Source: Nageia nagi
Taxonomy: Eukaryota; Plantae; Pinophyta
Length of the DNA stretch: 64,000 nucleotides
Direction of reading: 5' to 3'
NCBI GenBank assembly: GCA_050084985.1
Contig: JBITNC010000002.1
Location: 12,896,001 to 12,960,000 of the forward strand
Part shown: one piece after another, positions 10,663 through 56,520 of the stretch
Numbering within the stretch: position 1 is the stretch's first letter
How the letters are laid out: each line of letters opens with the position of its first letter
Notes under the pieces: model-generated
Databases searched by the model: none
What the model was told of the DNA's origin: nothing
Seen by the model: only the letters and a program-made list of their open reading frames with translations
Made by a program: the position numbers and the translations under genes

Positions 10663-10810
10663 TCTATTACAAAAATCTAACAGAGTAGATAAATAAAAGA
10701 GTACCTCCTATGTCTTACTTTCCATGCGTTGGATCTTTCTCTCTGTTCAGAATCTGATGATTCTATCACAAACAAGCAGATCCTGAATATACAACGATAG
10801 CTAGATGGAT
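10663..10810 (-). pseudogene. Decayed third MIR529 paralog (star arm and lower stem recognisable, mature arm lost)
   Basis: AGAGTACCTCCTATGTCTTACTTTCCATGCG matches copy a AGAGTACCTCCTGTGGCTTGCTTCCCGTCCG at 25/31. The preceding CTATTACAAAAATCTAACAGAG resembles copy b CTATCACCAAAACCAAACGAG. ATAGCTAGATGG resembles ATAGCCAGGCGG. Confidence 0.5.

Positions 10811-11755: not shown

Positions 11756-11758
<3 letters not shown>

Positions 11759-11820
<62 letters not shown>
11759..11820. repeat. (TA)n microsatellite
   Basis: Perfect TA run. Confidence 0.97.
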
Positions 11821-11825
<5 letters not shown>

Positions 11826-11889
11826 CATCTACTGGTATTTCACAACATCACTAGTTTAAACATTACGAAACATATTCTAACTTCATCAC

Positions 11890-12370
11890 AATTGGGAATA
11901 AATACGAATGCATTAAATACCATTAAGAGGAGGGGGTAGTGGTAGGGTGCATGCTTGTTGGCATCGAAATGGCAAGTTCATTAATAGCTCCAACATTCTC
12001 CATATTCTCATTATGCTTCCATGCATTGGCAAGGATCTATGATCAATGCGTAGTCTCCAATGTTTCTCGGATGTCATGCCAACTTGGGCCACCTATGTGT
12101 GATCAATAGTAAAAGACTATACCACCCATCCATTTGTAGTTTCCTTCTCTTCATTAATTGGAGGAGCTCATATGATCACCCTAGCCATGCTAACAAGGAG
12201 AGTTGGGATGAGAGTCCCACCCTCGAGTACTCCACTCAACAGTAGGAGGAGGATTCGATGGATCTTGAGGCAAAGGGTGAGGTGTACCCCACCCAACACT
12301 GGGAGGAGGATTCCATGGATCTTAAGGCAGATGTGGGGGGAGGATGATGACACTGCCTAAGCACCGATGA
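11890..12370 (-). other. Decayed proline-rich coding fragment with an internal 57-bp duplication, probably transposon-derived
   Basis: GC-richer island; GTAC(T/C)CCAC(T/C)CAACA...GGAGGAGGATTC.ATGGATCTT.AGGCA repeated with a 57-bp period (~12227-12340); reads PPHLP*DPWNPPPSVGWG. Confidence 0.35.
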
Positions 12371-13869
12371 ACTAGGAAGGAGGGGAGAACAAGAAAACTT
12401 ATTAAACATATATAATGAAAATGAAATGAAATGTAAATATTTTTAATGGAGTAGGAGGATAAAGTTTAAATTATAGAGGTTTCGATAATCAAGTTTTCAA
12501 TGAATTTAACATAAAAACTACCTCTATATGCATGACTTTCAAAACTAAAAGTTAAATTTTAATCTCAATAAGTATGTGACTTCTTAAAAAATAACTAAAA
12601 ATAAATCTATTTTTGAAATTGAATCTTTATTTTTGTAAATTTTGAAATTGATTTTATGAATTTTAAGAATCTTATATATTTTATAATTTGATGATTTAAA
12701 ATATTAAATTTAATTAAAAAAACATTATTTAATAGAATGAATACCATCAATTGTAGTGAGATTCTATAGTATTAATATTGAAATCAAAGGAAAATTAGAA
12801 AATGAGGAAAAGACTAGAAGGTTCAATTTGAGAACTTAAAAATTAGTAAACTATGTTTGTTGAAAAGTTGTAAATATTTATTATGAATAGTAGAGTTAAA
12901 TCTACCTTTTACAATCTCATTTTAAATGATTGCAATTTGATATTTTTAAGTTCAATTGTGTTTATAAACTTGTAATTACTACCACTACAAGATATATGAT
13001 ATTATATTTTGAGGTGGGTATCTATAATGTTCAACTTAATTATATTTTAATAATTATTTTTTAGCAATTGTTGTTAAAACTTCAAAATCATGATTTGTGA
13101 TGATAATTTGATTTAAAATGAAATGAATAAAAGTAAAAATTGTCATGTTTTCTATGGAAATGATAGTAAATATTATTTATAAAATAGAAATTAAGAATGT
13201 AAATCATGTTTTTCAAATAGTAATGTAGTTTTAATAATTATAAAATTATTACATATTTATGTAAATCATCATGTTAGAAGCATTTTTTTAAATAGTAGTA
13301 GTCAAGTAAAAGAAAATAAAATAAAATACAATGCTAAGAAAAAATTTCATAATAATAAATAAAATAAATGATCACATATTCAAATGCCTCAAAATAACTA
13401 GACTTAGCATACCCACATACATGTGAGAGGAGAGAGTTTTAAACCTAAGGCCTCTCTTTTTCCACTTGAAAGTTTTGAACTTCCCCTTCTCTCCAACTCC
13501 CCTAACATGATTGGATTCCAAAATAAACTTCTATTTCAAAACTGTAATTATAAATTTTGTACTTTTTTATATAATCTTCAATGCATTTTTTCTTTGAATA
13601 TAGTAATAAAATCGTTGTCCCTTTACAATAATTTATGTATTAGGCAATTGGTAATTGAGATCGTACATAGTCATCATTTAATTAGAAAATTTCGAAGTAC
13701 CTTTTCAAGCTATCAAAATAACTATTGGTGTTCTTAGTGTCATATTTTATTATGCTTGATCTATTTTTTTTTTTTACCACCAAATCTCCTTATCCCAAGA
13801 TGAGGTCAATCATATTAAAATAATTCCAATCTTCAAATTCTTGTTAGTAACATAGTCTTGCATTTAGTA

Positions 13870-26324: not shown

Positions 26325-29300
26325 TGAAAAGTATTCTACTTTTATTAATATAAAAAATGAAATCATTACATATATAGGTTTTGGACAAACCCAAAAATAA
26401 ACTTTGTTAAATATAAACTCAAGTTGCATGATCACAACTTGTTACAATCCAATGCAAAATAACACTAAAATATCCTAAATCTATCCTATCATACTAGATG
26501 ATAACTAGGCAAAATATCAGCCCAAAATAGTAATAACAATGCTAAAAATGAGGACAAAAATGGTAGTCCCATATATGTTAAATTTAGCTTGCTAAGTTTT
26601 ATTTATAGGCATGATGCACCTCATGCTCAAGAGGCTAGGCACAGTGCACCTAGGACTAGGCATAATGCACCTAGGGTACAGTGTGTTAGGCATAGTATGC
26701 CTAGGTGTAGGCTCAATGTACCTATGAACAAAAAGTAGTAATTATCAAAAAAATAATACTTATACCTCTAGTAGCGAGACATGATTCCAACCTTCTCCCC
26801 CTTGATGTTGAGGGGACTTACTAACATGCTTTTTAGCTTTAGAAACTAAGTTTTAATAACTCCTTTGGTGAATATATTTGCAACATTTTTGAGGGTGTTA
26901 TAATGTTTCATTTTAATGATGTCCTTCTCCACCATATCCTAGATGAAGTGATACTTCATATCAAAATGTTTGGATCTACTATGATGGACTAGATTAAGTG
27001 CTAATTGGATGATAATTTAGTTTTCATGGAACAAAATAATGGGGCCACTTTGTTTCTCATTAAGTTCCTCTAGAACATTTTGTAACCATAATGCTTGGGC
27101 ACTAGTACTTTTGATTGCAATATACTTTACTTCAATAGATGAAATAGCAATAATGGTTTGCTTCTTTGCACTCCATGAGATGAGTCTAGAACTAAAGCTA
27201 AAATAATGTTCAGATGTAGACTCTCTATCATCCAAGTTACTCCCCCAATGAGATTCACTATAGCCACAAAGTTTTACCTCATCATGCTTGTAGTAGTGTA
27301 TGCCAAATTCTGATGTGCACATATCTCAAAATCATCTTGCTTACCTTCATGTGTTCTTCAGTAGGATCACTTGTGTACCTAGACACAAGTGAGATACCAT
27401 GAGCAATATCTGGCCTAATTTTGATGAGAAACATCAAGCTCCTAACTAGGCTTCTAAATAAGGTTACATCAACCTTCATCTTTACATACTAACTTATCAT
27501 GATATATTGGAGTGGAAAGTGTTTGGCATTCATCATACTAAACTTCTTTAACACGTCATTAGCATATTTGGATTGAAAAATGAAAATCTCACCTCTGCTT
27601 TGAGTTATCTTCATGCTAAGGAAATAGTGCATCAATCCAAGATCTTTCATCTCAAATTCTTGCATCATATATGTGTTGAAATTATCATTCAATTTTGTAC
27701 AACTTCCCATATAGATTATATCATCAACATACAAGCACACAAGTAAGATATTTTAATATTTATTCATGATGTAGAGAGTGGGATCACTCTTTCTCCTTAT
27801 GAAACCATAATGATGAAAATAATCATCAATCCTTGCATACCAAGCTCTTGTACCTTGCTTGAGACCATACAAGATCTTCTTTAACTTATACACAAGATTT
27901 TCACTCCCTTCTACTCAAAGCCTTTAAGTTGTTGCACATAGACCTCTTCATCCAAATATCCATTAAGGGTTGTACTTTTGATATTAATATGATTCACTAG
28001 CCAATCTTTATGGGTAGCTAAAGAAAGAACCAACTATATTATCTATTGTATTGCTACTAGAGAAAATGTCTCTTCATAATCGATGCTATACCATTGGGTG
28101 AAGCCCTTTACTACAAGAATTTTTTTGTATCTCTCATTGCTTCCATTAGCATTGTATTTGGTCTTATAGATCTATTTGCACCCAACATGATTCTTTCCTT
28201 TTGGAAGCTCCATAAGTTCTTGAATATTATTCCTATTGATGGAAGAAATCTCTTCACCCATAGCCTTCATCCACAAATCATTAGTGCAATCTTAATCATA
28301 GTTAGATGGCTCAATCTCTATACTAGTTACCAAATCATAGTTAACTACATCACCTTTGGGTTCATCATTATCTTCATCACCATACATATTCAAATTTTCA
28401 AACCTTTTTATAACTTGATAAAGTTCACTTCCTTGGCTCCTTATGAATCTCCTTGAGAAATTTTTATCCAACATTTGGTTGGATGGGTGTGCTTGAAGTA
28501 TTCTTTTACCTTGCTTTTCTTCTTATACCTTGAAAAGTGAAGATTTTTCTTTGTTGGTTTGATCTAAAGGCTACACTTTAGAGAATCTATCTTCAATGGA
28601 TTCATCATCACCAATTAGTTTTTCATGATCCCATTCTCCCCCTTCATTAAAACTTACATCTCTAGACACAACAATCTTATAATTTTTTCCATTATACAAC
28701 CTATACGCCTTTATTTTCTCATAATAACCAAAAAAAATATATGCTTGACTCTTAGGATCAAACTTTCTCCTATTTTCATTAGGAATGTGAGCATAAGCAA
28801 GACAACTGAAAACTCTAAAATGTTTAACATTAGGTTTTTTCTCATACCATACCTCATAAGTTGTTATGTCATCCAAGCTTGAATTTTTACTTATATTCAA
28901 GATGTATACTATTGTCCTTACTGCATCTACCTAATATATATTGCTCAAAACATTTTTTTAGAACATGCTCCTTTCCATCTCCACTATGGTTTGGTTCTTC
29001 CTCCTTGATACACAATTTTGTTATAGAGTATAGAGAGCTATGAGTTGCCTCTTTATTCCATAATCTTTGCAAAACTTAAGAAATTCATTATAGCAAAACT
29101 CTTCTCCTCTATCAATCCTTAAACAATTTACAACACATTCACTTTGCTTTTCCACATGAGTTTTTAAATCTTTAAAATAGTCAAAAGATTAATCCTTGGA
29201 AGTTAGCAAATAAATCCAACACATCCTTGTGTAATCATCTATTAAGGTAAGAAAGTAAGAGTTCTTACTAATACTTTGTGTTTACATGGGATCAAAAATA

Positions 29301-31404
29301 TGGGAATACACCAATTGGAGGGGATAGATAGCTGTCCAAGCTTGGCCTCTTGGAAACTTCATCTATGAGTGCTTTCCCAAAGCACATCCTTCACACACTA
29401 TCTTGTTTTCTTTAATCTTGGGAAGCCCATGAACCATTTATTGAGATCTCAACAATTTCAAACTTGCATAGCTTAGATGGCCATATCTCATATGCCAAAT
29501 TCAACTCTTGTTCTCCATAAATACATTTTCTAGTTTGTCATAATCTCCTCTAAAGTTAAGTGGAAATAATCTATTATTGGTAATTTGTACTATAGTGACC
29601 AGCCTATGACCATTGTTCTTATCATAGATTACATACTTTCCATCTTCAAAAATAAGCTTATAGTTCTTCTCCATAATTTGTTCGACACTTAAGAAATTAT
29701 GTTTGAGATTGAGAGTATAGTAGATGTTATTTACCTTCTTAGTGCCTTCTTTGGTGTTGACCTCCATGGTTCCCATGCCTTCCATAGATAATGTATTTTC
29801 ATCCCCAAGCTTTATCTTGGATTTGAAAGAGGTTTCCATTGAAGCAAGCAACTCTTCTTTTATGTTCATGTGATTAGAAGCCCTAGTATCAAGAATCCAT
29901 GTTTCATAGAGATTTTTATTTATCTTTCCATAAGATAAAAATAAATTGAAGGTATCATAATTAGAGGTCTTATCCTCTTCTCCACAATTGGCCACACTTG
30001 CTTCTTCTTAGGTGGCCTTAGCTCTACACTCCCATTCATAGTGCCGAAATTTATTATAGTTGTAATATTATTTATTTTTCTTATCTCCCCTTCCATTCAA
30101 GCCACCTCTTCCTCTTACATGGGAAGCTCATCTCCTTCCTCTTCCTCTTCTTCAACCTCCTCTATTGCAAAATCCTTCTCATCATCCATTACAACTGGTG
30201 ATTATGTAGATTCTTGGAGCCTCTCTTCATGGGACATCAAGGATCCAATGAGATGATCATAGGTGAGAGTAGATAGATATTTGTCCCCTTCAATTATGAT
30301 TGTTGCATCGTTCTAGTTGGGAAGAAGTATTCTCAACACTTTCTTCTTATATTGGAATTCAAAATCTCTTCTCCAAGGATCTTAATCTTATCCACACATG
30401 CTTTTACTCTCACATAGTAATCCCCCATTATCTTACTAGCTTGCATCTTGAGATTTTCAAAATCTCTTTTTGAGCATTTGTAACCTTAATTACTTCACTT
30501 GGGTGCTACCTTGATAGATCACTTTGAGTGCTCTTCATGCATCTTGGGATGAAGTGCATGAGGCAATGTAAGGGAAGATGCTCTTATCCAAGGTAGCTTG
30601 TAGATGATAAAGTGAAAAATTCTTCTTCTTTTGAGCCTCCTTCTTAACAATTTTATCATTGGTCAGAAGAGTACTCTAATCAGTTGGATCACTATATCCT
30701 TCTTCAACTACATCTTATAGCCTCTTTCCTATGAGTAATGTCTTCATATTAATAGATTAATACTCATAATCCTCTCCATGGAAGTCTACAATTGGTAGAA
30801 TATTATTATTTGCATCCATATTGCTTAAACATAGTAAAAAAATACTAGATTATAGTCTATTGAAAGAATAAAATAAATTCATATAATTACACCCACTAAC
30901 TCTAACCCAATAGATATCCCTAAGGCTCTGATGCCATAATAAGAACTATTCTACTTTCATTAATCTAAAACATGAAATCATTACATACATTGGTTTTGGA
31001 AAAACCCAAAAATAGACTATGCTAAATATAAACCCAAGTTGCATGATCATAACTTGTTACAATCCAATTCAAAAGTAAACAAAAACATTCCAAATCTATC
31101 CTATTATACTTGGAGATAACTGGATGAAACATCATCCCAAAATAGTAACAATAATGCTAAAAATAAGTACAAAAATGGTAATTTCATACATGCTAAATTT
31201 AGCTTACCAAGTTTTGTTTATAGGCATAGTGCCTGGTCCTTAGGAGACTAGGTATGGTGCACCTAGGGTTGGGTGTGATGCACCTAGGGCATAGTGTGCT
31301 AGATGTAGTGCATCTTGGTCTATGCATGGCACACCTATAAATAGAGAGAAGTAATTCTTCCAAATTTATACTTGGACCTCCAACAAAGAGCCAAGTTTCT
31401 AACA
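26325..31404 (-). mobile_element. Near full-length degenerate Ty1/copia retrotransposon; LTRs ~30940-31404 (5') and ~26325-26792 (3')
   Basis: Two ~465-bp homologous LTRs; PBS TGGCATCAGAGC at 30936-30925; PPT AAGGGGGAGAA at ~26803-26793; gag CCHC, protease WILDTRASNHM, integrase, RT LYVDD (ORF 27489-27740), RNase H (ORF 27017-27322) in copia order. No clean TSD. Confidence 0.95.
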
Positions 31405-33989: not shown

Positions 33990-34850
33990 CTAATTTGTGG
34001 GATAAGTTTGAATATCTATGAATCTATTTTTGATTGATCCTTAGAGGGTCGATCCAAGAGGGATTGACAAGCCGATTATCTAACCAATATATCGATCAAT
34101 GTTGGGGGTGTTTTAGGGGTTGGAGTGATAGTAGGTATTATAGAGGTCAATCAAGATGTCATAGTAGGCTCGATCCATGATGATCAACAAATAGAGAGCA
34201 TTAACTCAATTTTGAGAATTCAAAAATATGCCTCATCAAGCCATAATTTCATAGTTAAACTCATAGTATGAAGGTGGATAAGTGAATTTTGGCAATAATT
34301 ATGGAGCCAATATTGTAGGAAGAGGTAATGTTAAGCTTGGAGATGGGAAGATTAAATTAGAAGAAGTGTTATTTGTGGTTGGATTAAAATATAACCCGTT
34401 AAGTATGAACCAAACATGTCACAAAGGTAATGATGTTATCTTCAAAAGGAAAGGCTATGGAATTAAAAGGGTAAATAGGGCAAGCTAATAGTTTTTAGAA
34501 TAGGGATATCTAAAATTTTATATAGTCTAAAAAAAACCATAATGTGATCTTGTTTACTTGGTTAGGAGGATGTGAATTAGTTGTGGCATAATAGACTTTT
34601 CCATGTTAACTTCAACAATATTGTAAAACTAAGATCAAGGAAGGTAATAAGAGACATACCTAGCATATCAAAGCCATCAAATAATAATTGTTATCCATAC
34701 CAAAAGGGTAAGAAAACTAGAAAATATTTTAAATCTAAGGAACATTTTACTAAAAACCATTGGAGTTAGTAAATATTGATTTATGTGGGCCAATGAGAAC
34801 TTAGAATTTAAATAATCATAGATAATTTATGTTATGCATAGATGATTTTT
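33990..34850 (+). mobile_element. Ty1/copia pol fragment (protease, GAG-pre-integrase, start of integrase)
   Basis: ORF 34282 VNFGNN...VLFVVGLKYNPLS; ORF 34581 WHNRLFHVNF; LELVNIDLCGP; truncated at ~34850. Confidence 0.85.
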
Positions 34851-34864
34851 TATACAAATAGGGT

Positions 34865-35785
34865 AAATATATTATTAAAAAATACAAGAGAGGTTTTGAC
34901 AAGGATCCCAAAGCCTATTACAATGAAATACTCTCACTTCTATCCATTTCAAAAAAAAAGGATCAGATAATACACTATTAACTACTTACATATCACTTGA
35001 TTGTAGCTAAACTATAGCCACCCTATATACTAAAATAATAGCCATATAATTCAAGCCTAACACAATAAAATGGCTAGGTCCATCATATCAACAATAAAAT
35101 GACTAGTATCTACCTAAGCTACATTTGACCCTCCCTTAGTCTTTGTTGTATCTATGACTAAATCTCTCATTTTCTTCTTTTTCAAGATCTTCTTCCTAGT
35201 CTTTGGAGGGGCATGAGTTTTTGGTTTCCTTATGGATAAGGGTTTCACTAATGTTTTCTTTTTCTTTATGTAACTCTACTACCTCCCTTTGCATATGGTT
35301 CTTTATCTAGGTCCTTTGGATGGGTAGGTCTTACTACTTATTACATGTAGGTTACTCTACAATTGATGAAATCAATCAGTTCCTCTAGGTTGGGTGTATG
35401 CATTATCTAAATTGGCATTAGGGTAGGGCCCTCCACTATAGGATCAAGTTGAGCCTTTCCCTTCATTTTTCCTTTAGGATCAAAACCTTTGGGAAAATTA
35501 GTAGGATCCTCCCCCTTAATTAAGTCCTTGTATGGACCTTTCATATATAATTCAATAATTGAGGTATCCTTCTACTTTTAGGCTTCATTTTTTTGGGGAG
35601 GGTTTTTTACATCCTCAACCTCAACTATCTCTTCTTACAGTGCCACTACATCTTACTTCTAATATGAGTTGACCTACTATGGGAATCAGTCACATCTTCT
35701 CCCATGGTTTGGTGTTGAGGTGTTTCCTCCCCCTCCTCTTAGTCTAACTCCTATGGGTGGAAGTAAGAAGTTTGTTCCACTTAAA
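34865..35785 (-). mobile_element. LTR retrotransposon 3' end fragment (PPT and 3' LTR, preceded by a K/E-rich extra ORF remnant)
   Basis: Minus strand AAGGGAGGGTCAAA-TGTAGC at ~35139-35119 looks like a PPT-LTR junction. Confidence 0.45.
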
Positions 35786-36244
35786 GAGGAAGTGCAGAGT
35801 AAAAATTTGGGTCCAAAAAAATTAGAATACTGATATTAAACAAATTAGGATCCCAATTTTTTGAGATCTTGATCCTAAAAGATATTGAGATCCTGATATT
35901 GGTTTTTCACCTAAACCCATATTGGGATTGTAAAATATACAAATTTCAATATCATGATGCAAGCTATGGAACTTATTTTTGATCTTTGTGACCTACACCT
36001 CCCAGCAAGCTTTAAGCAATGGACTTGCATTTTTGGGATACCAATTTTAGTGTTCCTCTTACCCTCCTTTGCCTTTTTTTCACCCATAATTTTATAGGTA
36101 AATTAGAGAAACCATTTTCATTATTATTTTGGGTTTGTTTTGCTAAAATATCATACTTTTTTAGGTTTTTTATGCTAAAATATCATATGTATTTTTGCCA
36201 TTTTGTTTGTGATTTTTTTTATATTTTTTATAGAATTTAGTTTA

Positions 36245-36560
36245 AATATGATCATTAGACTTAGAAATATAACAAACATATATACTAAACACATAAACTA
36301 AATTCATAGGTTCTTGATACTAAAATAACTCATTAGACCCATAAAAGTTACAAACATAAATTCTAAACACATAAACTAGACATACCTCTTGATACTAAAG
36401 TGGCTAATTAAACTCAAAAATGTAACAAACATAGATGATAAACACATAAACTAAACACACCTCTTAATACTAAATTAGTTTATTAGACTCATAAATGTAA
36501 TGAACATAGACACAACATATAAATGAAACACGTCTCTTGATACATAATTGAACACAACTA
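36245..36560. repeat. ~4-copy ~75-80 bp minisatellite
   Basis: AAACATA..T.CTAAACACATAAACTA...CTCTTGATACTAAA recurs. Confidence 0.8.
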
Positions 36561-38572
36561 AAAGATAATCTGATAAGGCCACATTCTATGTGAAAACAAA
36601 TCCAATATAATCTTTATTTTTCCATCAACCAAGCCAATATCAGGTGTGTGATATACTTCCCAACAATTGATTAAAATTAATCCAAGAGTTTGTTGAACCC
36701 ATAGAATGATAAGATTCAATGGTGGAGAGCATTGATGTTCTTATATTTTAGAATATATCAAGCATACATGATTATGACATTGATATGGTTTGGATCTATA
36801 GAGAAAAAATACTAGAAAATATAACATAATTATAATTTTCCATATTCAAAATTGTATATTAATTTTAAATAATTATAAAGTTTCTAAAAGAAAGAGGATG
36901 TTGGGGGAATCCACCAAAAATATTTATTTCCATGAAAGACATTGGGAGTATATGTTTTAAAAAAGTGAAAAAAATCATTTATAGGAATCATTATCCCTAT
37001 TATAAATCTAGAAGAGATGTTTAATGTGTTCTACAAGAGTGATAAAATGGCAAAAATGGCTTATTATACTAAGATGTTTGAGGTAATTTCTTATTGGTAG
37101 CCCATGAAATATTAAAATCTTGATAAAGAATTATTAATTTGGTTCCAATTAAGATGTTAAAAGTATTTGAAATCATAAACTGTATATGAATTTAGGTGTT
37201 AAATCCCCACCTTTCATTTATTTTCTTAACATTGGGATATACGTGTCAAATTACCATCAACATTCCTCCCACTATGCTTTTTGAGAAAATAAAATACCAA
37301 TTTTTTGTAACATGATAATAAGTACATTCTCTTTTGTTACTTGAAATATCTTATTGTATGAATTAGCAAGTTTGAATGATAATTTCAAGGTCTCCTATGA
37401 TAACTAGTCCCTTATATGATGGAAACTTATTTTCATTTATATGAATACCTTCCTTATAAAATTTTGGGCATGTATATATGAAATTTAAGAAAATGGAACC
37501 TCTTGGAAGTTCAATACTATGGACAACCAAAAATTAGTAAGTTAAGAGATAGCTCATTTATTCAATTGATACTTATATGAAAGTTAGGGTCAAATGGCTA
37601 CTATAAATTTATCATTTATTCAATTGATACTTAGGGGTGATTATGGGAAACTTATAAGAGGAAACTAGAATAGTTCAAAAGTTGAGAGTAGGTAATTGAT
37701 AGAGAAACACTAGGTGTACTACATGTAGTTGATATGTCAATAAAAGTTGAAAAGCTAGGAGAAACTAATAAGTTAGGAGTAATTGGGTGGACCTTAGAGC
37801 AATGGCTTTCATGTAGGCCCATCTACATCAAAAATACTAAAATCATAAAAACTACCACATACATAAAAAATTTACATTTTATTTCTTTATCCTTTTCATA
37901 ATATTCATCAATCAATTGTAATACCTATTATATGTATAAAAACTTTTCAATACATAATTATCATTAAAATTTTAGGTACATTAAAATTGGATGAGTTTTA
38001 TTTGTTTAAATTAGATGAACTTAACATTATCTTGGTGGTGGTGGTTTGACTTGTGGTTTTATAAGATAATATGATGATGATTATCTGTCTTCCCCTTTAA
38101 GAAGTGATTTGATAGGGAAGAGGAAAGAACTAGCCTCTATAATGTTTCTTGATAAAAGAGATTTGGAAATTAAAAACATGAAAGTAAATATATTAGTGAA
38201 GGGGATAAGCATAGGAGAGAAATCAAATTTATGGATCATAACAAGAAGAAAAATAACTAATAATTAGGCATATGATAGACTTTTCTTAAATATTTTTACT
38301 TAAATAAATAATTGTTAGGAATATATGCTTCTACCTCCTATTGTTTTGCTTTTCACTTTAGTGTAATAACTAACTTTGGATTTAATTATAGTCCTTTAAG
38401 TTGAATATGTATAGTATGCATCTTCTTATATATATATATATGATAGTTGTTTAGTTAAACATGTGATATCTAATTTATAAGTAATGCACTTTATTCGATT
38501 ATTATCTAATTTAAATTGAGTTTATTTATATTCATATGTAATATCTAATATTTGTAGGTACCTTTTTATTAT

Positions 38573-40750
38573 CATGGATGAGTCATCTCATGACTTTTCT
38601 CATGGTATATATGAGACATTGGATGATGTGAACTAATACATCCCATAAAAATTCACCCCCTCCACATGTTGAACCTCACACCCCTCCACCCTCTCCACCT
38701 CCACCCCCATACCCATCCCCACCCCCACCTTCACCCTCACCCCTCCCATCACCATCCCCACCCTAACCCCCTCCACCACCCCAACTCATTCTTGTAGATG
38801 AGAAATACTTATAAGATGTTATTGCTCATGATAACAATCAATTACTAAAAAAAATACATCATACATAAAGTATTCATAGTTGATGCTATTAGGAGTGTTA
38901 ATGGGGATATAGCTCATGTTATACGATTTTCATATTTGATGCTACCTATAGTTGATACTATTATGAGTATTAATGGGGATATGTATGGTTTTAAGATATG
39001 AAGAGATCGCATGAGATAACATTATTCAAATGGTCACTCCACTTAAGAGGCAAATAAGTTAGGTATTACTAAAGCCACCCTTGTTTCACACTTCATTGAT
39101 CTATCTACTGGATAATTTATACCACCTAATAAAGAAATAATTCCCTATGATTGGTTCACATATCCTATGATAGCTCAAAATTTTTCATATTGATGGTGGA
39201 TGATGTTAATACACCACCACATTCCAATTTTTATGTCTCATATCCCTTTGTAGTTTTAGAAGAAAATATATGTTGAGTATGTATTAGGTAAACATGTCAA
39301 TTATTTTGACATGAGGCATAATCAAGGGATTTATCATGGTTCAAGGAAAAATAGACCAGAGGCATAGGTCAATCTAAGTTAACTTGTATGTCTTACACCA
39401 CTCATCCCTCCTCCTACTCCTATTCCTACCCTAGCTTTTCATTAGGTAGTTATTTCTGCATTGAGAGCATTGAATCAAGTGATCTAAGCTCTCATTGAAT
39501 AAGCTACACATGTGGTAGCTAATATTAGTGACCCTAGAGATGATACTAGAGTTAGTGGAGTTGCTCCTCATTTTTACTACAATTATGGTAGTATATGTGT
39601 TGGTCCCCCTTTAGATGATCATGAGATATTTATATGAAGATGATTTCAATGGATAATGTTGACCTTACTCAAAGAGAGGTATATTTTTCATATTTTTTGT
39701 ATGTTTAATATACATATATATTTCTAATTAAACTTGAATTATATATATACCTAATTTAAATTTTAAATACCTTTATATTTATTTATCATATATGATGGAA
39801 GCCTCCACTTTAGGTGTATCTCATAGAGCTTTTATGACATTGAATCCTAGATCTACTAGCACACCTTATGAGGTAAACAAATATACCAAGTTTAAAAATT
39901 TACATGTTAATTTTGTTAGATATTTGTCACATTTGAATGTGTACATGTGTATGCTTAAAAAACATTTCCTATTGTAGGTATATTTCCATCCTGAGATGAT
40001 AATATTTGACCAACAAGAGGTTATATTGATGTTTGAGCCTTCAGTGTCCATCACTCCATAGTATATCACTTAGATGTCTTCCTCATTTTAGGTAATTTTT
40101 TAACATACATTTTTATGTGTATGTATGCAATTTGTAGGCCTTAAAAAATTTCATGTTAATTTTTTTATATATTATTCACATTTGAATGTGTACATTTGTA
40201 TGCTCAAAAATAATTTCTTTTTTCAAGTATAATTCCATCCTGAGATGACCACATTTGATTGATGATAGGGCATGTCGATGGATGAGCCTTCAGTGTCCAC
40301 CACTACATAGTTTGTCACTCAGATGTCTATTTCATTTTTGGTAATTTTTTAAAATACAGTTTTGTGTATGTATGCAATTTGTAGGTCTTAAAATATATTT
40401 ACAAATTTAAAAACCTTATTTTTATTCAATAGTTCTTTATTTTATCTTGTAGGGTGTTATTTGTTATACATTTCATACCAATGAAATGGGTACATCATCT
40501 ACATAGCTAGATATTGTTATTAAGGGAGGATCTTAGCAACATGATATGTTAATATTTATGTGCATTTTTAAAACTTTTAGATAGATTAAATTTATTTTAT
40601 TAAATATTTAAAGGATTTACAAATATGAATGATAATATATGATAAGTTAATTTTATTTATGTTATACAACATGGGGCATCTTCATTACTTGAAAAGAAGA
40701 GGAGGATCGATGATGGATACACATCTAATCCTAGATAGATAGATCTAGGA
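38573..40750 (+). pseudogene. Decayed multi-exon ORF of unknown function with a poly-proline N-terminal region (transposon cargo)
   Basis: Acceptor TTTGTAG at ~38558, ATG at 38573, CCN-rich tract 38655-38785, coding-like EYVLGKHVNYFDMR, GT-AG introns near 39679, 39871, 39978, 40091, 40452; multiple stops. Confidence 0.5.
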
Positions 40751-41339
40751 TTGATTTTGTAGTTTTTTTTGTATGTTAGTTGTAGATAATGATATATGTA
40801 TATGGACTTTGGACATTATTGTGGGCATTGGATATTATTATTATGATGTTATTATGTTATTATTATGGAATTTATACATTGTTATTATGGACATTGGACA
40901 TTTTTATTGTGGACATTATTATGGACTTTTGATATTATTATTGTGTACTTTGGACATTATTATTGTGGACTAGATGCTATTATTACATGAAATATATAAT
41001 TTGAAAATATGTTATTATGATGTTGTTATGTATTTTTCACATAATTATTATGATGTTGTTATGTATTTTTCACATAATGATTATAATGTTGTTATGTATT
41101 TTCATCTCCCCTTCATCTTTCCCTCTATTTATAATATTTATCCCTTCACAAAATTATAATCATAGGATTAATAATTTTTTGATAATGTTCAATTTTACAC
41201 ATGTTGTAATATATATTACTAAACAATAATTAGATAACAAGTTTACAATAAGATAACAAATTTACAATTATTGTAATATATTCATAGAATTAATAATTTT
41301 TAGATAATGAGTTTATAATTAGATAACAAGTTTAATAAT

Positions 41340-43050
41340 TGGTGTGAGTATGATGTAGAAGGGGTGGTTAAAAAAATTTGGATATAGGAAAGGAATGAAA
41401 AAAATGCAGAAATAATACAAGGTTCAAAAAAATAATAGGTAAGTTTCTTTTCTCCTTAGCTTCGACATTCTTTGTAGGGGAAATCAGGCCAATATTAGTA
41501 TTGAAAAATGTTTGGGTGAAAGCCATGACATTCATCAATAAAGTGTAGAAAATATCCCAAGGGGAGATGCCTCAAGCATAGATGATACCTCCTTTACAGG
41601 TGGAAGAAAAAGGGAACAAAATCTCTCTAATGATCTTGGGTGATGTAATAACATAAGAAAAAGAAAGAAGTCAATTAAATGTAATCGGTAAAATGCATGG
41701 TACAAACCAAATATTGATCTTATTCAAGAATGGATTAATTCATCATGGAAGGTGAAGAACAAGGTATAAGTGGCTTCCATGCCAAATAATTTCATTATGT
41801 TCATGCTCAAGTTAGAAAAAAGATAGAGATCAACTCTTGAGTAGAGCAGGGTTTTTTGGAAAGAGAGGCATGATTCTGTAGAAATGGTATCCAAGATTTG
41901 ATCCATAAAAGACCTAGAAAATGGAGGCTATAATAGTGTATTGGTGGAATTTTAGAATCAAATGGTATATTAAGGAACAACAAATAGCTTTGTCAAGTTT
42001 ATCTCTACAAACTCAATTACAAAAACATGCACCCAACTCATGGTAGCTAGACTATGTGTCATGATGGATTTTGTTACTAAATTACCCACCAACATTTTGC
42101 TTGAATCAAAAATGGTTGAGCATAAAAAAAGGATCAAGTATGGGAAAAATATTTATCTATGTCAAATTTGTACTTAGGTTGGATACAATGAAGAAACATG
42201 TCTGACCAAAATCTCTATAGAGAAAAAGAAATGGAGATTGACAAGAAAGCATGAGGATCATGATCAAGAAAAAGTGAATTCAATGGATAGAGAGCCTAAT
42301 GGAGTTTAGGTCTCCCTTAGATCACTTCCTAAAATAAATTTAAGTGTAAATTAGATGAAATCAGTGAATCAAGAACAAGGATAAGCCTTTGGCCCATAGC
42401 AAGAAATAGTTGAAAGCACAAAGGAGTTGGATTTGGTAAATTAGAAAATAGAAGAAGTGGCCATAAGGATGGTTATGAAGAAAAGAAAGCAAGTTTGCTT
42501 ACTAGTTAAGAGTCACCAAGTTGACTCAAAATAAACAAGTCTTATCAGAGAGGATTGTAGAGTCACCAAAAGTATGTCAAAAAGAATGGACGTAGGCCAA
42601 CATCTTGTGGAAAATTAAACAATAGCAAGGTAAGAGATAAGTAAAATTCTAAATACATTTTCAATGGTAAACATGCCTCCCTACTTAGGTTTGGTCAAGT
42701 TTTCCTCCTCAAACTTGATAATAACTAGACTATGAAAGAAAGATAGATTAACCATGGACTTCATAATTGGTACTCTTTGCAGATTAGGAATAGAATTTTA
42801 TTAAACATAGAAATGGATTGTACCTAGTATCTAGCATGTGGATTACCTTGATTCTCTCACATCTAGAATTGCATAAAATAAATAAGGAATGATGATGAAC
42901 CAAATTTGCTTCTTATGGGTGGGTTTCTATAAAGAAAACCCTTCCAATTTAACCTTACCAAAAAGAAAAAGTTTAGCAATTGTTTTAATTGACTAGTATT
43001 CTTCAAAAATATGTGAAATAATGTGTTTTATAAGAATATTGTTAAATAGA
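41340..43050 (+). mobile_element. L1 LINE ORF1 fragment nested in the DNA transposon
   Basis: EWINSSWK..ASMPNNFIMF, KWYPRFDP and knuckle CQICT*VGYNEETC (~42160-42202). Confidence 0.65.
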
Positions 43051-44460
43051 GAATCATAAGTATCTAAGCTAATAATGAAAAATGATTTACAAAATTGATA
43101 TTTATTGATCAAGTAAGATAAAATTTATATTTACTTCCTTTAATGTTATCTTTTGTTGAATAACAAGAGATTCTAGAAACTATAAATGCTTCAAGACCAA
43201 GATAATGTATCATATCCTAGTAATGCAATCTATCTGTCCATATATTCATATGATAAAAATTATACCATACAAGGTAAAACTATCAATTACCATATGCATC
43301 AATATAATATAACTAATGATTCACCATACTTCTCTTAAAGTATATACAAAGTTACAACATTGTAGAATGTAATCTTGTAGCTTAATAGTTATGGCTTGTA
43401 TAAATTGTACTATTATATGTCCTTAAATAAAATGCAAATTATGTCACATATTATTTATACCTATCATACTATTTCTATTACATATGATTTTTATTTATAA
43501 TTTTGTATGTAATGTACTATAATTGTTCATTATCATAATATAGTGAAATGCTTATGTTATACATATCATATTCTAATTCCTATATAATATTTATATATGA
43601 TCAAACATGATGTTATCTTAACTATACAATCTCATACACATCTATTATCGCATGTTATTTCATGCAACATATTACTATGATAATTTTATTTGTAAGTTAT
43701 ATTATGCAAGATAACAATATTATGTTCATTTATTTACAAGTTCTAATATGTGAAATATCTTCCAAAAATTTACAATTTGTTTATGCAAACTAAATAAATT
43801 ACAACTTAGTCAAATCAAAACAAATTTATTGTTGTAATGGTCATACTTAATTCAAACATACTATTACAAGCCTTTAATGTAATATTTAAATACCTAAAAC
43901 ATATGAAATTCATAGTGAAAGTGGTAGATGGGCAATTCCTCAAACACCATAGGATGAAAGAATTTCTAAGTTTCATAATATTTGATCCATAGAAGATGAG
44001 ACTTGTTTTCTTTTTATTCATTTTACTAAGATACTAAGAAAACCTACAAGGATATTTGTAATTACACTTTGATCCATGAATTCTTAAATCAAGCTAACTA
44101 AAATAAGCTTGATGATTTTATTATGCATCTTAATTCTATTAAAAATAATTATTTAAATATATAATTGATATTTTTGTATCTTGACAAATTTTGATACATC
44201 CTTGAAATCAATAAGTAAATACAAATTTTAGCTTACTTGATCAATAAGTAAATAGAAAAAGGTTTACAAAGAGGTTTACAAAATAGAGAAATCTTTAATC
44301 CATTACTTAGATATGGATTCACATATGGTTTCATGTGCATATAATCATATATATTAGATATGGATTCCATGTGGGTGATGATGACATACATATTGAAAAT
44401 ATTTCTTTGAATAGATGAATGATAATTTTTAATAAAATTTAAATATAATTAGGAAAGGTA

Positions 44461-44532
44461 TTTCATCTATAGGAATCAAACCACAACAACATGGTGAAAA
44501 GCCATGTGCTCTACCAATTGAGCTAAGACAGC
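44461..44532 (-). pseudogene. tRNA-Lys(UUU)-derived pseudogene
   Basis: GCTGTCTTAGCTCAATTGGTAGAGCACATGGCTTTTCACCATGTTGTTGTGGTTTGATTCCTATAGATG aligns with the recalled plant cytosolic tRNA-Lys(TTT). Anticodon stem CATGG/CCATG and A-box intact; CpG-decayed; A37>C; damaged B-box and acceptor 3' end. Confidence 0.8.
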
Positions 44533-44533
44533 T

Positions 44534-44773
44534 GAGGGGAAGGGGAGATAAAGGGGTGAAGGGGTGAAGGGGTGAAGGGAAAGGATAAGTGGTGATGAAG
44601 AGGTGAAAGGACAAAAGGGAAGGGAAAGTGGAGATAAAGGGGTGAATGGTTGAAGGGGAAGGTAAAGTGAAGATGAAGGGGTCAAGGGGAGTAGGGGAAG
44701 GGGAAGTGGAGATGAAGGGTGAAGTGGTGAAGGATAAGGGGAAGTGGAGATGAAGGGTATGTGGAGAAGGGGA
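44534..44773. repeat. Purine-rich low-complexity tract (GAAGGGGT / GGGGAAGTGGAGA variants)
   Basis: Many GGG/GGGG runs, e.g. AAGGGGTGAAGGGGTGAAGGGGTGAAGGG. Confidence 0.9.
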
Positions 44774-44789
44774 TATAAACTTATATATA

Positions 44790-47560
44790 TTTTTAAGTCA
44801 ATGATACCATCTACATCCTCTTTTTCATGTAATACATTCATAATTATCTTATGTTCTTGTATTGAAATGTTCCACAACACTTTATTAGTAGACATATTTT
44901 TATATCTTAATAGTTTAATATTTTTTTATCAATATCAAATGAGAATAATGAATAATTTTTTATGTGCTTCATAATATTTGTATGCTTTTAAATCATTCCT
45001 TCTTAATACTAATTTTCATAGCCATGTGCTAACAACCACTACAAAACCTGTTAGATACTCAAATCTATCATCATCATATCAAGGATAAGTTAACTTATTT
45101 TTTCTCTCAAAACATTGAGCCAACCAATACTCTATTTTCTCTTCATTCCCTGCAGGTTCCATAACATAATACACATATCCTACAAATAAATATTATATCA
45201 ATAAAGTGCAATATATATTTAACTAGTTCATATATATACAAAAATGAGCAATCATATAAATAAACTAAAAAAAGAAAGTTTAAATTGAATTAAATTACTT
45301 TCTTGTACAAGGTTAGAAATATGATCATATTCCTCTAATGTAAACAATTGATTCTCATATTCAATGCATATTTCTTATTGATCATGTGATTCTATAGGTG
45401 TTAAAGATCTTTGTTTCCATTCCTCAACCCATTTTGTATTTATACATGCTTCTAATTCAACTGCAATACAAGAATCATAAAAACATACAAGCTTCCTTAT
45501 CCAAATAGTCCATGTGCTTGGATTTAAACTCCTAAATGAATTCCATTACAATGATCCATTAAGTGTCTCATAATCATGATGAATCGTAATATTATTTTCT
45601 TCAACTAACCAAAATAATCATTAAATTATAAAATTCTCTTTGATCCAGTAGATATATTTGTATTACATCAATCCACAATTGTATATGCATCTTGAAATTT
45701 TATTGAATCTTCAATTTGAAGTTATTCTCTACTGAGATCTCTTTTCACACATGCACTAGCTCCATCATGTTCACCTTTACTATGTCTAGATTCAAAAAAA
45801 GATCATATATGGTGGATATTGTGTTCTTTATGCATCCAATTTAACTAATAAAATATTTGTGCATTATTCAATTGTCCTGTATAGGTATCTGACCATATGA
45901 AATGTTGTTCCATTTGAATATTTCTTTCTTTCAAATTATTATAAAATATCATAAAGCAAAAATGGATAAATTTTGGTGAGTATAATCAATTATCACTCAC
46001 ATAAAAATGGTACTTCCTCAAAAAAACTCTATTATCTTTTGTACTATCATTTGCATTTCTATATATGATATGAACAAAAATGAAACCTTGTTGAGAATTA
46101 TAATACTAAGACTGTATTTTTTCTTATGGTGTAAGAGTATAATTTTTTACAAAGTCTACAACTAATAATATAGTTCAATATGGAAGTGTATTTCTACATT
46201 GATAAAATTCAGTATCAAGCCATCAAGGATGTTGGGAATGTTTCACATATTTTGGAATAAAGTTACTCTTAAAATCATCCATTAATGTATGTATATTAAC
46301 ATTTTCAGTGATTAGATCAAAATACTTCCTAGTTTTTTGATCCCTAATGCATACTCAACATTCTTGAATTTTTTTATATCCACTAATGTTTATCCAAATT
46401 TGTGTAAACTACTTTCATGCATACATTCTCCTAAAAATGAAAGGCTCCCACATATACTACATTATCCTGAAATACATGCATTTGAATAAAATGATTGAAC
46501 ATCTAGAATTTGACAAAATAAACTTGCTATAAATACATTGATAGATTAAGGTGGCATATTCAAACCACATCCTTGCATGAAATTGTTAGTATGTAAAGTA
46601 CCATGTATATATAGAAAAATTTGATATTAATAGCTAAATTGCATATAAGTTTTACAACAAAATGCTATCCTTTGCTTGTTAGTTCTAACATACCAAGGTT
46701 AATATTTTTCAAAATATCTTTGACTTAAACTAATATTAAATGTACATAACACTTTATCATTTACAAAGTTTTTATACAATTGAGTTTGAATCATATCTAA
46801 AAAGTGTTTTGGATGCTTAGGTTGACAACATTTTGACCCTAAAGATTTCCTTTCTTTTAAAACATCTTTAATATTAGGAGATACCCTTGTATGATTATTC
46901 CAAGATTTTTCAATTACATATTTTATCTTGTTAGTCAATTTCCTATCATACCTAGGATTCTATACTAAAAATCCAATATTAGTTAGTTGGATCAATTTCA
47001 ATACTTTTTCTTCTCTTTACAACTCTTTGCAAAGTTTTATGGTGTATATTTAGATATCCACTAAGGTTACCAATCATATTTTTCTTTGTAGTTGGTCTAT
47101 TTACTAGAGTAGTTATTATGGCTCATTGTGTCACATTACTATCTTTATATCAACTCTTCTTCCCAATAGAGTCCATGGCACTAACAAAAGTGAATATAAC
47201 TTGTTTTAAGGGTTCCTCTTTTTTCACACAAATACCTAAAGTTTTCATTACTCTTCTAATTTTTTACATTCTCGTTAATTGCAACATGAATTGATATTGA
47301 AATCATATCTCCTTATTAAGGAAAATTTGATCATATATTCTATTTATATGTGTTCTCATTTTTCCACACATATCATACTAGGAACATTATCTAAGATATT
47401 ACATTCAATATGTAAAAAAATATTATCAAGAACAATATTTATATAATTATTATTATCAATATTGTCATTCTTAATATCATTAAAATGTGGATTTGAAGAT
47501 ATACCTTGATTTGTGTCTATAGTTTGTACTCCAAGGCTAAGGGTTAGCTCACCAAAGTTT
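44790..47560 (-). pseudogene. Degenerate Sola2-type DDD transposase
   Basis: Translated motifs: TRVSPNIKDV...KHFL..LYKNF...YFEKY*PWYVR; CCK; ACISG*CSICG; VVDFVKNYT (D1 46156-46154); IQS*YYNSQQ; FYVSD; WSDTYTGQL (D2 45889-45887); FFESRHSKGEHDGASACVKR (D3 45766-45764); CFYDSC. Probable intron ~45299-45150. Confidence 0.75.
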
Positions 47561-47894
47561 ACTACAAAAGGGAAAAAAGGTAACATACAACAATTAATTA
47601 GTGAGTTTTTCAGGACTTAATCAATCATTAAGCTAATAATTAGTTTAAATTTAAAAAATTAAGTAACCAATATATAGTGGCATTATGTAAACTAAAGGAA
47701 AATTATAAACTTTAAGCAATCAATATATATATTTTCTATCCTTATGAGACATATGCTTATCCTAATTTGAAGAGCATTAAAGAGACTATTTACAAGAGAT
47801 GATGAAAATAAAATAAAATTAATGAACTAATTACATTTACATTTAGAGTGGAGATACAAGAAACCATTAAAATAAAATCAATGAACTAATTTTG

Positions 47895-48573
47895 TTTAAC
47901 CCCATTCCAAGGCCAAACCTTGATAGGGTCTACAAACCCTAAACTCTAAACCCTAAACACCTAAAACCTAAACTCTTTGCTACTATAATTTACAAATTCT
48001 TAAACCCTAAATCACTAAACTCTTATTTACTCTTAACCCTTAAAATGTTTAACCCCTTTAACATAACACCTTTAACCCCATTGGACAAATATTTTTAACC
48101 CTATTGGCCAAACCTTGATAAGGCTTAAGGGTTTAGAAAGAAACCCTTAATCCCTAAACCGATAAACTTTTATTTACCTTTAACCGTTAAAATCTCAAAC
48201 CCATGTAACCCTTAAACTCTTAAACCTAAGTAACTTTTAAACTCTTTAATTCATTTAATATAACATGTTTAATCCCATTGGCCAAATTTTGTTTAACCCT
48301 ATTGGCCAAAACTTAATAAGACCTACAAATCCTAAACTCTAAACCCTAAATCCTTAAGTCATAAACCACTAAAATCATATTTACCCTTAACCCTTAAAAT
48401 CTTAAACCCAAGTAACCCTTAAACTCTTAAAACCCTTTAACATAACATTTTTAACCACATATATACTAGATTTTGTTTAACCTTATTGGCCAAACCTTGA
48501 TAGGACCTACAAACCCTAAACCCCTAAACCCTAGATCCTTAATTCCTAAACCACTAAAATCTTATTTACCCTT
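47895..48573. repeat. Telomere-like (AAACCCT-derived) higher-order array, left part
   Basis: Degenerate AAACCCT/AACCCTT heptamers organised in ~185-195 bp units anchored by GGCCAAACCTTGATAGG (near 47911, 48106, 48304, 48488). Confidence 0.85.
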
Positions 48574-54048
<5,475 letters not shown>

Positions 54049-54722
54049 CCCTTAACCCTTAAACACTTAAATCCAAGTGACTCTTAAACTCATTAACCCA
54101 TTTAACATAACATGTTTAACCCATTGGTCAAATTTTATTTAACCTCATTATCCAAACTTTAATAGGATATAAAAATACTAAACCCTAAACCCTTAAAACC
54201 TAAACCATTATCCCTTAAACCCTAAATTGTTAAAACCTAAATACTAAAATGTAAACCCTTAAGCTCTAAAACCTAAATTGTAAACCCTTAACCTCTAAAA
54301 CCTAAATTGGAAACCCTTAATCCCTAAACTACTAAACTTTGAAATCCTTAACCCTTAAACTCTTAAACCCAAGTAACCCTTAAAATCTTTAACCCCTTTA
54401 ACATAATGCTTGACCCCATTATTCAAATATTTAACCTCATTGGTCAAACCTTGATAGGATGTACAAATTCCATAAACTCTAAAATCTAAACCCCTAAAAC
54501 CTAAACCCTAAACCCTTAAGCCCTAAATTGCTAAAACCTAAACATTAAATAATAAACCCTACAACCCTAAACCTTAAAATCTTACCACTAAACCCTTAAA
54601 CTCTTAAATGTTAAACCTTAAAAATATTAAACCCTTAACCCTTAAAATCTTAAACCCTTAACCCTAAAACCTTAATCTCTTAAACCCAAGTAACCCTTAA
54701 ACACTTTAAACCCAAGTAACCA
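54049..54722. repeat. Telomere-like (AAACCCT-derived) array, right part
   Basis: AAACCCTAAACCCT and variants; the unit interrupted at 48573 resumes here. Confidence 0.85.
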
Positions 54723-55289
54723 TGTTGGCCAAAGTCTAACATCATTTGTAAAATGTTTAACTATTTTGACCAAGTGGTCATATTAATCTCCTATTTTTTT
54801 GTGAAAAATAATCAAATAACTGTATGTTTATAAATACTTTTTGATAAACTTTTATAGGTCCTAAAATCCAATTGGTTTTAAAAGGCTATTAAAAGACTTA
54901 TTTATCTATCTATTCACTTCTAGAAAAGCATTGGCAGGTCCTACAAATGATTGTTGATAAAGTTTTCAAACATGTTGGCCAAGTGGGCACATTAATCTTG
55001 TATGTGTTTGTGATAAATAATCATTTAACTATATGTTTTTAAATACTTTTAGATAAAATTTGATAGGTCCTACTGACTTTTTGAGTTAAATAAAAGGATG
55101 TTATTAGACTTATCTATTTATCTATGTATGCATTTCATGTTTAAAAGTGTTATGATATGTATTGATTAAATGTCTTTATTTTTTAAGTTAAAACATTTTC
55201 TTGAAAAAAGACTACAACTTGATCCATGTACATTAATTAGTAAATCATAAGTACACATAGTTCCATAAATTCAACATAGAAATATAAAG

Positions 55290-56061
55290 AGAGAGTAAAA
55301 TCATGTATGACATATTTAGAGGATCCTCTTTTCATCCACTTAAGAAAATATCATTTGTGATTTAGCTTCATTTATAACATTAATCATTTGACTATAGTTC
55401 TCATAACCAAATTCTTATATGATCCATTATTAGTAATTCTCATAATTAAGGTTCTTAAGATAATTAATAGGAGTGTGAAATAACTTGATTTCCTATAGGA
55501 TTTTGTAGTTGTACAAGCAAAATTATAAGAACAACTCTAATAGTAAGAGTACAAACATGAGCTAGATGTGTCATTTCAAGTGGTGTATGGAAGGAACTAT
55601 GTGTCATTTCAAGTGGTGTATGGAAGGAACTATTGAAAGTGGAAATAAACCTAATCAATAATCCCTTATCATGTCAAGAAGTGATTACTAATTACATAAT
55701 TTCTCAATCATTTGAATAAGTTCCATGATATTGTTGAAAAGCACCTAAAATTATTAAAGGATATGAAGATTCGAAGATATACCTACATTTGTTTCCATAT
55801 TCATTGAATTTGAAGCTTCATTCAATGGTGTATTCTCCTTTTCAATGCATGCATCATCTACAATCATATCTACATTCACATTCTCTTTAATTTCCTCCTC
55901 TTCAATTGAGATAGAACTTTCATATGATTCATTACAATTTATTTCTTTATTTTGTGCTCTTTTTGCTATTTTTCATTTTGTATTATTCTCTCTTTATATA
56001 AGAATTTCTTCAAATCACATGACCTTCCTTCCTCTCCTTGTTTGGATTTTTTATCACCCAT
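55290..56061 (-). pseudogene. Probable 5' exon of the transposase gene (acidic, low complexity)
   Basis: ATG at 56061 about 420 bp inside the inferred terminus; SYESSISIEEEEIKENVNVD; a GISSN.H motif shared with the exon at ~47500; in-frame 33-bp duplication at ~55566-55633. Confidence 0.4.
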
Positions 56062-56520
56062 GGTGTTGATTAGCTTTCAAATTTACAAATTCAATATTGT
56101 GTATATTCAAAGGAAATTCATAATTACAATGGTTGATTTAGGATTCGAAACCTTAATTCTCTTCATAAAAAACTTAATTTAGCTTCAAATTAATTGAAAT
56201 GGATACCTTGGGTATCAAACTTAGTATAATGATTGAATAAGATACATGCATATGATAAAACCAAAATATTTTTAATAAAAAAATCACTATCTTTCACACT
56301 GTACTGTACTCTACAAAGGGGAAGAGAAATGATGTAGAACATATCTATCCAAGAAGGTGATTTTTTATCCTAATAATTTAATAAAAATTAGGATCTCAAT
56401 GAACATATCGAGATCCCAATGTGTTTTACAACTGTTACCATTGTAAAATATATCAAGATCCTGATATATTTAAAATTCACTTCCCATATGTACCCATCCA
56501 AACTCATCCATTAGCCTTGT

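Follow-up and report, generated by a model that had tools for sequence, protein, structure and literature searches.

What did a transposase gene that lies between two distant, facing clusters of short repeats once belong to? The question is raised by a 20.7-kb interval (35,786-56,486) of the Nageia nagi genome, within a stretch of 64,000 nucleotides from contig JBITNC010000002.1 that we call the window and to which all coordinates refer unless another contig is named. A preliminary description of the interval proposed a giant Sola2-like DNA transposon, about 13 kb long after removal of nested elements, with several cargo genes, a tRNA and telomere-like repeats. According to our analysis, the locus holds one dead representative of a Sola2-type cut-and-paste DNA transposon that is present in many copies and belongs to a gymnosperm-type clade, and the 20.7 kb as a whole are a dead nested wreck in which no new mechanism was shown. 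The 64-kb window has a guanine-plus-cytosine (GC) content of 23-35% and contains plant-type telomere-like repeats and many decayed transposons.

A decayed Sola2-type transposase gene

The transposase gene occupies 44,800-47,586 (to about 47,600) on the minus strand, as delimited by tblastn and phmmer searches and, for the N-terminal end, by eye. Its motifs could be read directly from the frame, with DFVKNY at 46,156-46,139 followed by WSD and then HSKGEHDG. The catalytic acidic residues are encoded at 46,156-46,154 (D1), 45,889-45,887 (D2), and 45,766-45,764 (D3), with 89 codons from D1 to D2 and 41 codons from D2 to D3 in a frame (about 46,200-45,700) that contains in-frame stops. The motifs and spacing announced for this transposase were thus confirmed. 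The copy in the window carries at least 21 in-frame stops, and its frame changes fall partly at the intron positions of intact relatives. The gene once encoded a transposase of about 900 amino acids with an RNase H-like catalytic core, the three acidic residues of which sit in DF.ENY, WSDG, and HGKG..DG, and it is now a pseudogene.

The longest stop-free piece (86 amino acids; 46,702-46,959) was used as a phmmer query and gave 23 matches, the best with an E value of 1.3e-17 and 62% identity; all 23 are short fragments from metagenome and Logan contigs. With the alignment of these fragments, we retrieved 15 metagenome loci (GC content of 34-51%, 13 of them at 34-40%). When the open reading frames (ORFs) of one locus, L004, as well as P0030 and P0036, were compared with the window by tblastn, an end-to-end alignment from 46,956 to 44,800 was obtained at ∼40% identity, with E values of 1e-39 to 1e-54 for the L004 protein and 1e-90 for a Cryptomeria protein. 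The N-terminal stretch up to ∼47,586 was matched by eye only. Searches with blastn and tblastn found no second transposase copy within the 64-kb window.

In order to place the gene, we compared L004 and the window copy with the 888-amino-acid Sola2_DFa-2 transposase from the supplement of Bao and Jurka 2013 (PMC3627910), by eye and without a computed score. Five blocks are common to both sides and follow the same order: DFKENIAL in Sola2_DFa-2 versus DFAENYTL on our side, EELSQNFY..Q.SI....Y versus NEIQSQYY..Q.SI....Y, the SD..H..YV.H..KLF block (KEHFDVFSDVLNHCSSYVIHSIKLFF versus KESHFYISDDRTHDIHYVQHCFKLFY, 12 of 27 residues identical), FWSDGAKHFKSA versus IWSDGCAGQFKNA, and W.F....HGKSDVD versus W.Y....HGKGEHD. 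The aspartates are spaced D-87-D-41/43-D in Sola2_DFa-2 and D-89-D-41-D here. More broadly, the block order of the Sola2_DFa-2 and PPa transposases (RVS..I, F.K..P, C..C, DF.EN, E.Q..Y, SD..H..YV.H..KLF, WSDG..FK, HGK..D; Bao and Jurka 2013, PMC3627910) is also present in our family, and both groups have a single large transposase of ∼900 amino acids and apparently short termini. Judged by eye, the transposase is similar in sequence to that of Sola2, the D-D-D triad included. The host differs, being a seed-plant-type genome here, and so do two features of the ends considered below: at the proposed ends in the window we detected no AT-rich target duplication of 4 bp, by which Sola2 is defined, and the 18-bp palindrome clusters near the ends of this family are not mentioned in the descriptions of Sola2 that we consulted.

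Other superfamilies were considered and set aside, as no Pfam transposase model of KDZ/Zisupton, CACTA (EnSpm), MULE, hAT, PIF/Harbinger, or piggyBac matched the relatives or the pieces from the window. Pfam assigned no family to the window's own transposase pieces and, at E values up to 1, none to the three L004 ORFs or to 10 diverse family members. An AlphaFold model of L004 ORF2, which covers the core of this relative, reached a predicted local distance difference test score (pLDDT) of 85.8 and a predicted template modeling score (pTM) of 0.83. The model has D60 on strand 1, D149 at the end of strand 4, and D190 on the helix after strand 5, and its order matches the beta1-2-3, alpha1, beta4, alpha2, beta5, alpha3 arrangement of an RNase H-like core. 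Comparison of the model by VIA-align gave Z scores of 10.6-9.4 to retroviral integrase cores, Mos1, Metnase, and IstA (140-177 residues aligned), with lower scores for Hermes, the P element, and Tn5; Foldseek alone returned weak RNase H-like matches only. As modeled, the core of the relative is of the DDE/D transposase-integrase type with an RNase H-like fold. Together, motif order, aspartate spacing, the predicted fold, and the lack of any other Pfam transposase match support the Sola2-type assignment, and the gene is very probably a dead Sola2-type transposase gene, however its ends are read.

The same description had suggested an undescribed plant family. This suggestion is not supported, since Sola is already recognized in plants other than angiosperms (PMC9804982, PMC12973397): it counts among the eight superfamilies of plant DNA transposons, is missing from angiosperms (PMC9804982), and accounts for few recently active plant elements (PMC12973397). 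Sola has no Pfam model (PMC5751038), which is why its elements are rarely annotated. Our family is an ordinary member of this rarely annotated plant transposon group, whose occurrence in non-angiosperm plants was already documented, and its recognition is of value for the repeat annotation of giant plant genomes. Sola was reportedly defined by Bao et al. in 2009 by DDD transposases and 4-bp duplications, with plants already among the hosts.

Relatives and copy number of the family

Of the hundreds of proteins in the family, not one carries a Pfam domain. Those with a named host are from Cryptomeria japonica, Taxus chinensis, the moss Ceratodon, the liverwort Calypogeia, and the charophyte Klebsormidium; the conifer homologues (LOC131074642 and LOC131066816 of C. 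japonica, KI387_026096 of T. chinensis) are recorded as "uncharacterized protein." The Cryptomeria and Taxus proteins and the genes of L004, L007, and L003 align with the window copy over the whole length at ∼40-50% identity. All of these are intact or nearly so, whereas the window copy is decayed, and the conifer relatives seem to be ∼4 kb long compared with the 20.7-kb span in the window. In a maximum-likelihood tree of the catalytic core, for which each stop in the window copy was replaced with X, this copy was sister to the Cryptomeria protein (support 98/91). Taxus and the conifer-like contigs joined the pair in one clade (97/90), separate from those of the bryophytes and charophytes, so that the family forms a gymnosperm-type clade. 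The branch of the window copy is long, as expected of a pseudogene. Protein atlas leads pointed to arthropod and cnidarian hypothetical proteins, some with DUF7869, a domain of which our literature search found no mention.

A gene structure was read from L004:116-2972, a near-intact Sola2-type gene on a conifer-like metagenome contig that also occurs in L005-L008. It consists of three long open frames, with what seem to be two short introns between them, and carries the motifs DFAENY, IWSDGCAGQFKN, and GHGKGEHDG. Because the gene is near intact and the L004-L008 contigs are 99.9% identical across five samples, the L004-type copy is, judged by its sequence, a candidate active element. Two other contigs showed peculiarities. 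In L009, an intact-looking copia polyprotein with gag, integrase, and reverse transcriptase (9892-13614) lies directly behind, and probably inside, another copy of a Sola2-type gene. In L012, positions 1-368 and 1367-1734 both correspond to one gene segment but run in opposite directions; this palindromic contig is probably an assembly artefact.

The locus itself was not found in public sequencing runs, where the best share of words was 0.09. We then aligned contigs of four related runs on 43,000-48,990 at ≥80% likeness, a span that includes neither proposed end and in which the contigs represent paralogues or relatives only. The family proved highly abundant, with thousands of matching contigs (16,190 in one of the two large runs and 17,460 in the other). 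The summed depth of the contigs was 2,000-55,000 over 45,000-47,599, ∼700-800 at 47,600, and ∼125 at 44,200-44,399; further left of 44,200 it was 10-80, except over a nested inverted-repeat element. The highly repeated unit in the four runs is thus essentially the gene body, and a long repeated unit is not supported. At many sites the window copy differs from all other copies; for instance, the stop at 46,701 has a T in every other copy. These private differences identify the window copy as a private wreck of a large family.

Proposed ends and extent of the element

The proposed left end (35,786-35,897, plus strand) has GGAAGTG at 35,788-35,794, followed by palindromic 14-mers at 35,844, 35,860, and 35,884. 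Facing it, the proposed right end (56,387-56,486, minus strand) has palindromic 14-mers at 56,387, 56,407, and 56,452, and then CACTTCC at 56,478-56,484. Each cluster therefore has GGAAGTG just outside it, in inverted orientation. The GATC-centered 14-mer pattern WTYRRGATCYYRAT has six matches, three per end and nowhere else in the 64-kb window, against a chance expectation of 0.18 per window, and none of 100 shuffles reached the observed count. A pattern derived from the left cluster alone matched two of the right-end sites and nothing else elsewhere. These results confirm that subterminal repeats are shared by two sites 20.7 kb apart. We read the six 14-mers as decayed ATATCG-GGATCC-CGATAT sites in which CpG has turned into TpG or CpA.

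Similar clusters accompany the gene in relatives. Arrays of the palindrome ATATCGCATATGCGATAT lie ∼450-570 bp upstream of the gene in L007, L005, L006, L003, and L013, and L011 has an 18-bp palindrome of its own, AGTGCGTTATAACGCACT, upstream of its transposase gene. The arrays of perfect 18-bp palindromes cover L007:1629-1760, L003:16-65, and L013:410-570 for ATATCGCATATGCGATAT and L011:200-335 for AGTGCGTTATAACGCACT. GAAGTG is found 45 bp outside the L007 palindromes and at the 3' end of L003, both candidate ends. Different subfamilies have different palindromes, to which the transposase may bind; near-intact copies with such candidate sites are found in conifer-like DNA. Since palindrome clusters with identical outer arms characterize the gene family, the clusters in the window are tied to the transposase, and the two ends are probably related to each other and to this transposase family. 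A further 17-bp word, TTGCACATTTTCATTGR, occurs in direct orientation just past the stop codon in L004 (3006-3022) and upstream of the palindromes in L007 (1608-1625) and L013 (386-403).

We also considered whether the clusters might have nothing to do with the transposase, being the ends of another transposon family or a chance pair, with the gene a fragment nested in something else. Weak termini, the lack of a target duplication, and a central hexamer that is GGATCC here and CATATG in the relatives are in line with this explanation. However, relatives in the gene family have the same arms, ATATCG..CGATAT, and the same layout, in which at least three palindromes lie near an outward GAAGTG, and by chance only 0.18 matches per window are expected. 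We regard an unrelated origin of the clusters as improbable.

The explanation that we favor, with a probability of roughly 0.55, is a single old Sola2-type element that spans both ends and was inflated by later insertions to 20.7 kb. Its transposase would bind short ATATCG-N6-CGATAT palindromes clustered near the element ends and would then excise the element and insert it elsewhere. The clusters at 35.8 kb and 56.4 kb, each with its outward GGAAGTG, would most likely be the ends of one old element, originally ∼4-6 kb long as in the conifer relatives. Its inflation would be due to a long terminal repeat (LTR) retrotransposon of 5.5 kb, an inverted-repeat element of 1.15 kb, arrays of satellite and tandem repeats, and ∼7 kb of decayed DNA that fits no class, and none of this extra DNA was shown to be cargo. 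A single element explains why there are two clusters, why they face each other, and why there are no more of them.

Several observations weigh against this explanation. The terminal inverted match is limited to the 7 bp of GGAAGTG, a word of which the window has nine copies, counting both strands; the short inverted termini first described are therefore weak. Sola2 elements have a 4-bp, usually AT-rich target duplication and, in dictyostelid families, terminal inverted repeats of 12-22 bp. A check for the 4-bp duplication at 35,786 and 56,486 found none (AAAG versus ATAT), nor did borders shifted by 1-3 bp reveal one, although decay could have erased it. Beyond the palindromes the two ends share nothing, as blastn gave a single 24-bp match with an E value of 0.03, and the conifer relatives show palindromes only 5' of the gene. 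The Sola2 comparison, being made by eye, comes with no alignment score. About 7 kb between 35,930 and 43,099 are assigned to no nested element. Finally, depth falls 6- to 15-fold at ∼44,400-44,460, ∼350 bp past the 3' end of the gene, and the repeated unit may end there. A single element sits badly with both this drop and the ∼7 kb left unaccounted for.

The drop in depth would be better accommodated by a compact element that has its 3' end at ∼44.46-44.53 kb and owns only the end at 56.4 kb; the 35.8-kb cluster would then be a solitary terminus from a different copy of this family, with ordinary flanking DNA making up the intervening 8.7 kb. Toward the left, depth indeed declines from ∼700-4,800 to ∼125 at 44,200-44,399 and to 10-80 beyond, the nested inverted-repeat element excepted. 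In a purine-rich array just 3' of the gene, GGGGAAGTGGAG is oriented as a left terminus would be, with GGAAGTG at 44,702 and 44,740, and the length of only ∼4 kb that the conifer relatives seem to have would also agree. Conversely, no GATC palindromes adjoin 44.5 kb, the 35.8-kb cluster faces the 56.4-kb cluster with no third cluster in the window as a partner, and a few contigs link 44,270 to 44,442, so that some copies share sequence beyond 44.46 kb. We hold the compact element to be a tentative alternative to the single inflated element.

An ATG-led, acidic, serine-rich open stretch at 56,046-55,757 is encoded on the minus strand, like the transposase, ∼440 bp inward from the right end, and terminates in AG|GTATAT, which resembles a splice donor. 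It may be a former first exon, but a comparison with the N termini of the relatives detected no similarity.

Cargo and nested sequences between the ends

An element of ∼13 kb in which cargo genes, a tRNA, and telomere-like repeats are integral modules would predict passenger genes that recur together with the ends, and none were found. No internal stop-free piece tested matched any Pfam family, no cargo gene was recognized among them, and the extra DNA consists of the nested LTR retrotransposon, the inverted-repeat element, and tandem arrays. Nor do the supposed modules co-occur in relatives: none of 15 had telomere-like or purine-rich arrays, and none of the eight scanned with ARAGORN had a tRNA. 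The tRNA piece in the window is truncated and degenerate, and depth is near background left of 44,400. On the other side, the unique region upstream of the gene (47,600-47,893) and the telomere-like array have similar depth (∼700-2,200 in two runs), and the junction of the 3' end of the gene with the purine-rich array is multicopy, which means that at least the telomere-like and purine-rich arrays may travel with the subfamily. We consider the giant cargo element very improbable.

A narrower version seems unlikely as well, namely, that a Sola2-type subfamily carries a built-in telomere-like satellite upstream and a purine-rich array with a tRNA-Lys-like module downstream, its ends being recognized via ATATCG-N6-CGATAT clusters. 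If the modules were built in, transposition would distribute telomere-like repeats to interstitial sites across a very large plant genome, and the palindrome clusters would represent a binding-site design not yet described for Sola elements.

The telomere-like satellite, derived from AAACCCT, was confirmed in two parts on the plus strand. The first (47,893-48,573), made of units of ∼182-197 bp, lies directly upstream of the transposase gene, and the second (54,049-54,713) is continuous with it once the LTR element is removed; the insertion thus splits one satellite in two. In the four runs, contig joints within the satellite skip ∼185, 385, 410, or 520 bp, or roughly one to three units. From these joints, the satellite appears to be dispersed or variable elsewhere in these genomes.

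Directly 3' of the stop codon is the purine-rich array (44,527-44,774, plus strand), with about five 39-bp units. It contains GGGGAAGTGGAGAT-like units, two of them exact and a third with one extra A, which resemble the terminal motif, and a 210-bp contig bridges 44,740-44,948 at 98% identity. Next to it, the tRNA-Lys copy of the preliminary description was recovered as a degenerate fragment (44,466-44,528, minus strand) that matches the Rfam tRNA model RF00005 at 32.2 bits (gathering score, 29; E value, 0.0028) over model positions 5-66 of 71, with TTT in the anticodon loop. ARAGORN called no tRNA in the window, and the fragment is a tRNA pseudogene or the head of a short interspersed element rather than a functional tRNA.

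The LTR retrotransposon (48,574-54,048, plus strand) has TG..CA ends, a polypurine tract (AAAGGGGAG at 53,555-53,563), and a perfect 5-bp CCCTT target duplication at 48,569-48,573 and 54,049-54,053. Its LTRs are 83% identical and cover 48,574-49,045, which is rearranged and followed by a further partial copy at 49,403-49,749, and 53,565-54,048. In contigs of other copies, which reach 48,574, this first base is preceded by a purine-rich tract. A nested element of ∼5.5 kb had been foreseen here as copia; the LTR retrotransposon with its duplication stands, but the copia identity was not shown, as the element has no recognizable coding domains and copia queries matched only 27,050-30,157 and 34,276-34,882, both outside it. 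The former is a remnant with integrase and reverse transcriptase (minus strand), and the latter is a gag/pre-integrase fragment (plus strand) that stops ∼900 bp before the proposed left end. An L1 of ∼1.7 kb had also been proposed, but motif scans and Pfam detected neither L1 nor any other reverse transcriptase between the ends; a YVDD at 40,505 looks like chance. Within the LTR element, a (TA)n/(TG/CA)n microsatellite forms a palindrome at 50,950-51,370, and sub-threshold Rfam microRNA matches at 51.0-51.3 kb (mir-297, mir-466, and others) are artefacts of the (TA/TG)n sequence.

The inverted-repeat element of ∼1.15 kb (43,099-44,250) is bounded by 38-bp inverted repeats that are 92% complementary, with a possible TA duplication. 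A contig joint from 43,467 to 44,130 indicates other copies without 662 bp of it. The remaining intervals, 35,930-43,099 and 54,713-56,387, consist of tandem arrays and unclassifiable AT-rich DNA. The arrays are found in a stretch at 36,254-41,340 with no recognizable coding sequence and comprise a 75-bp unit repeated 3.9 times (36,254-36,543), a 249-bp unit repeated twice (39,894-40,403), and arrays of 22-, 33-, and 70-bp units (40,836-41,340).

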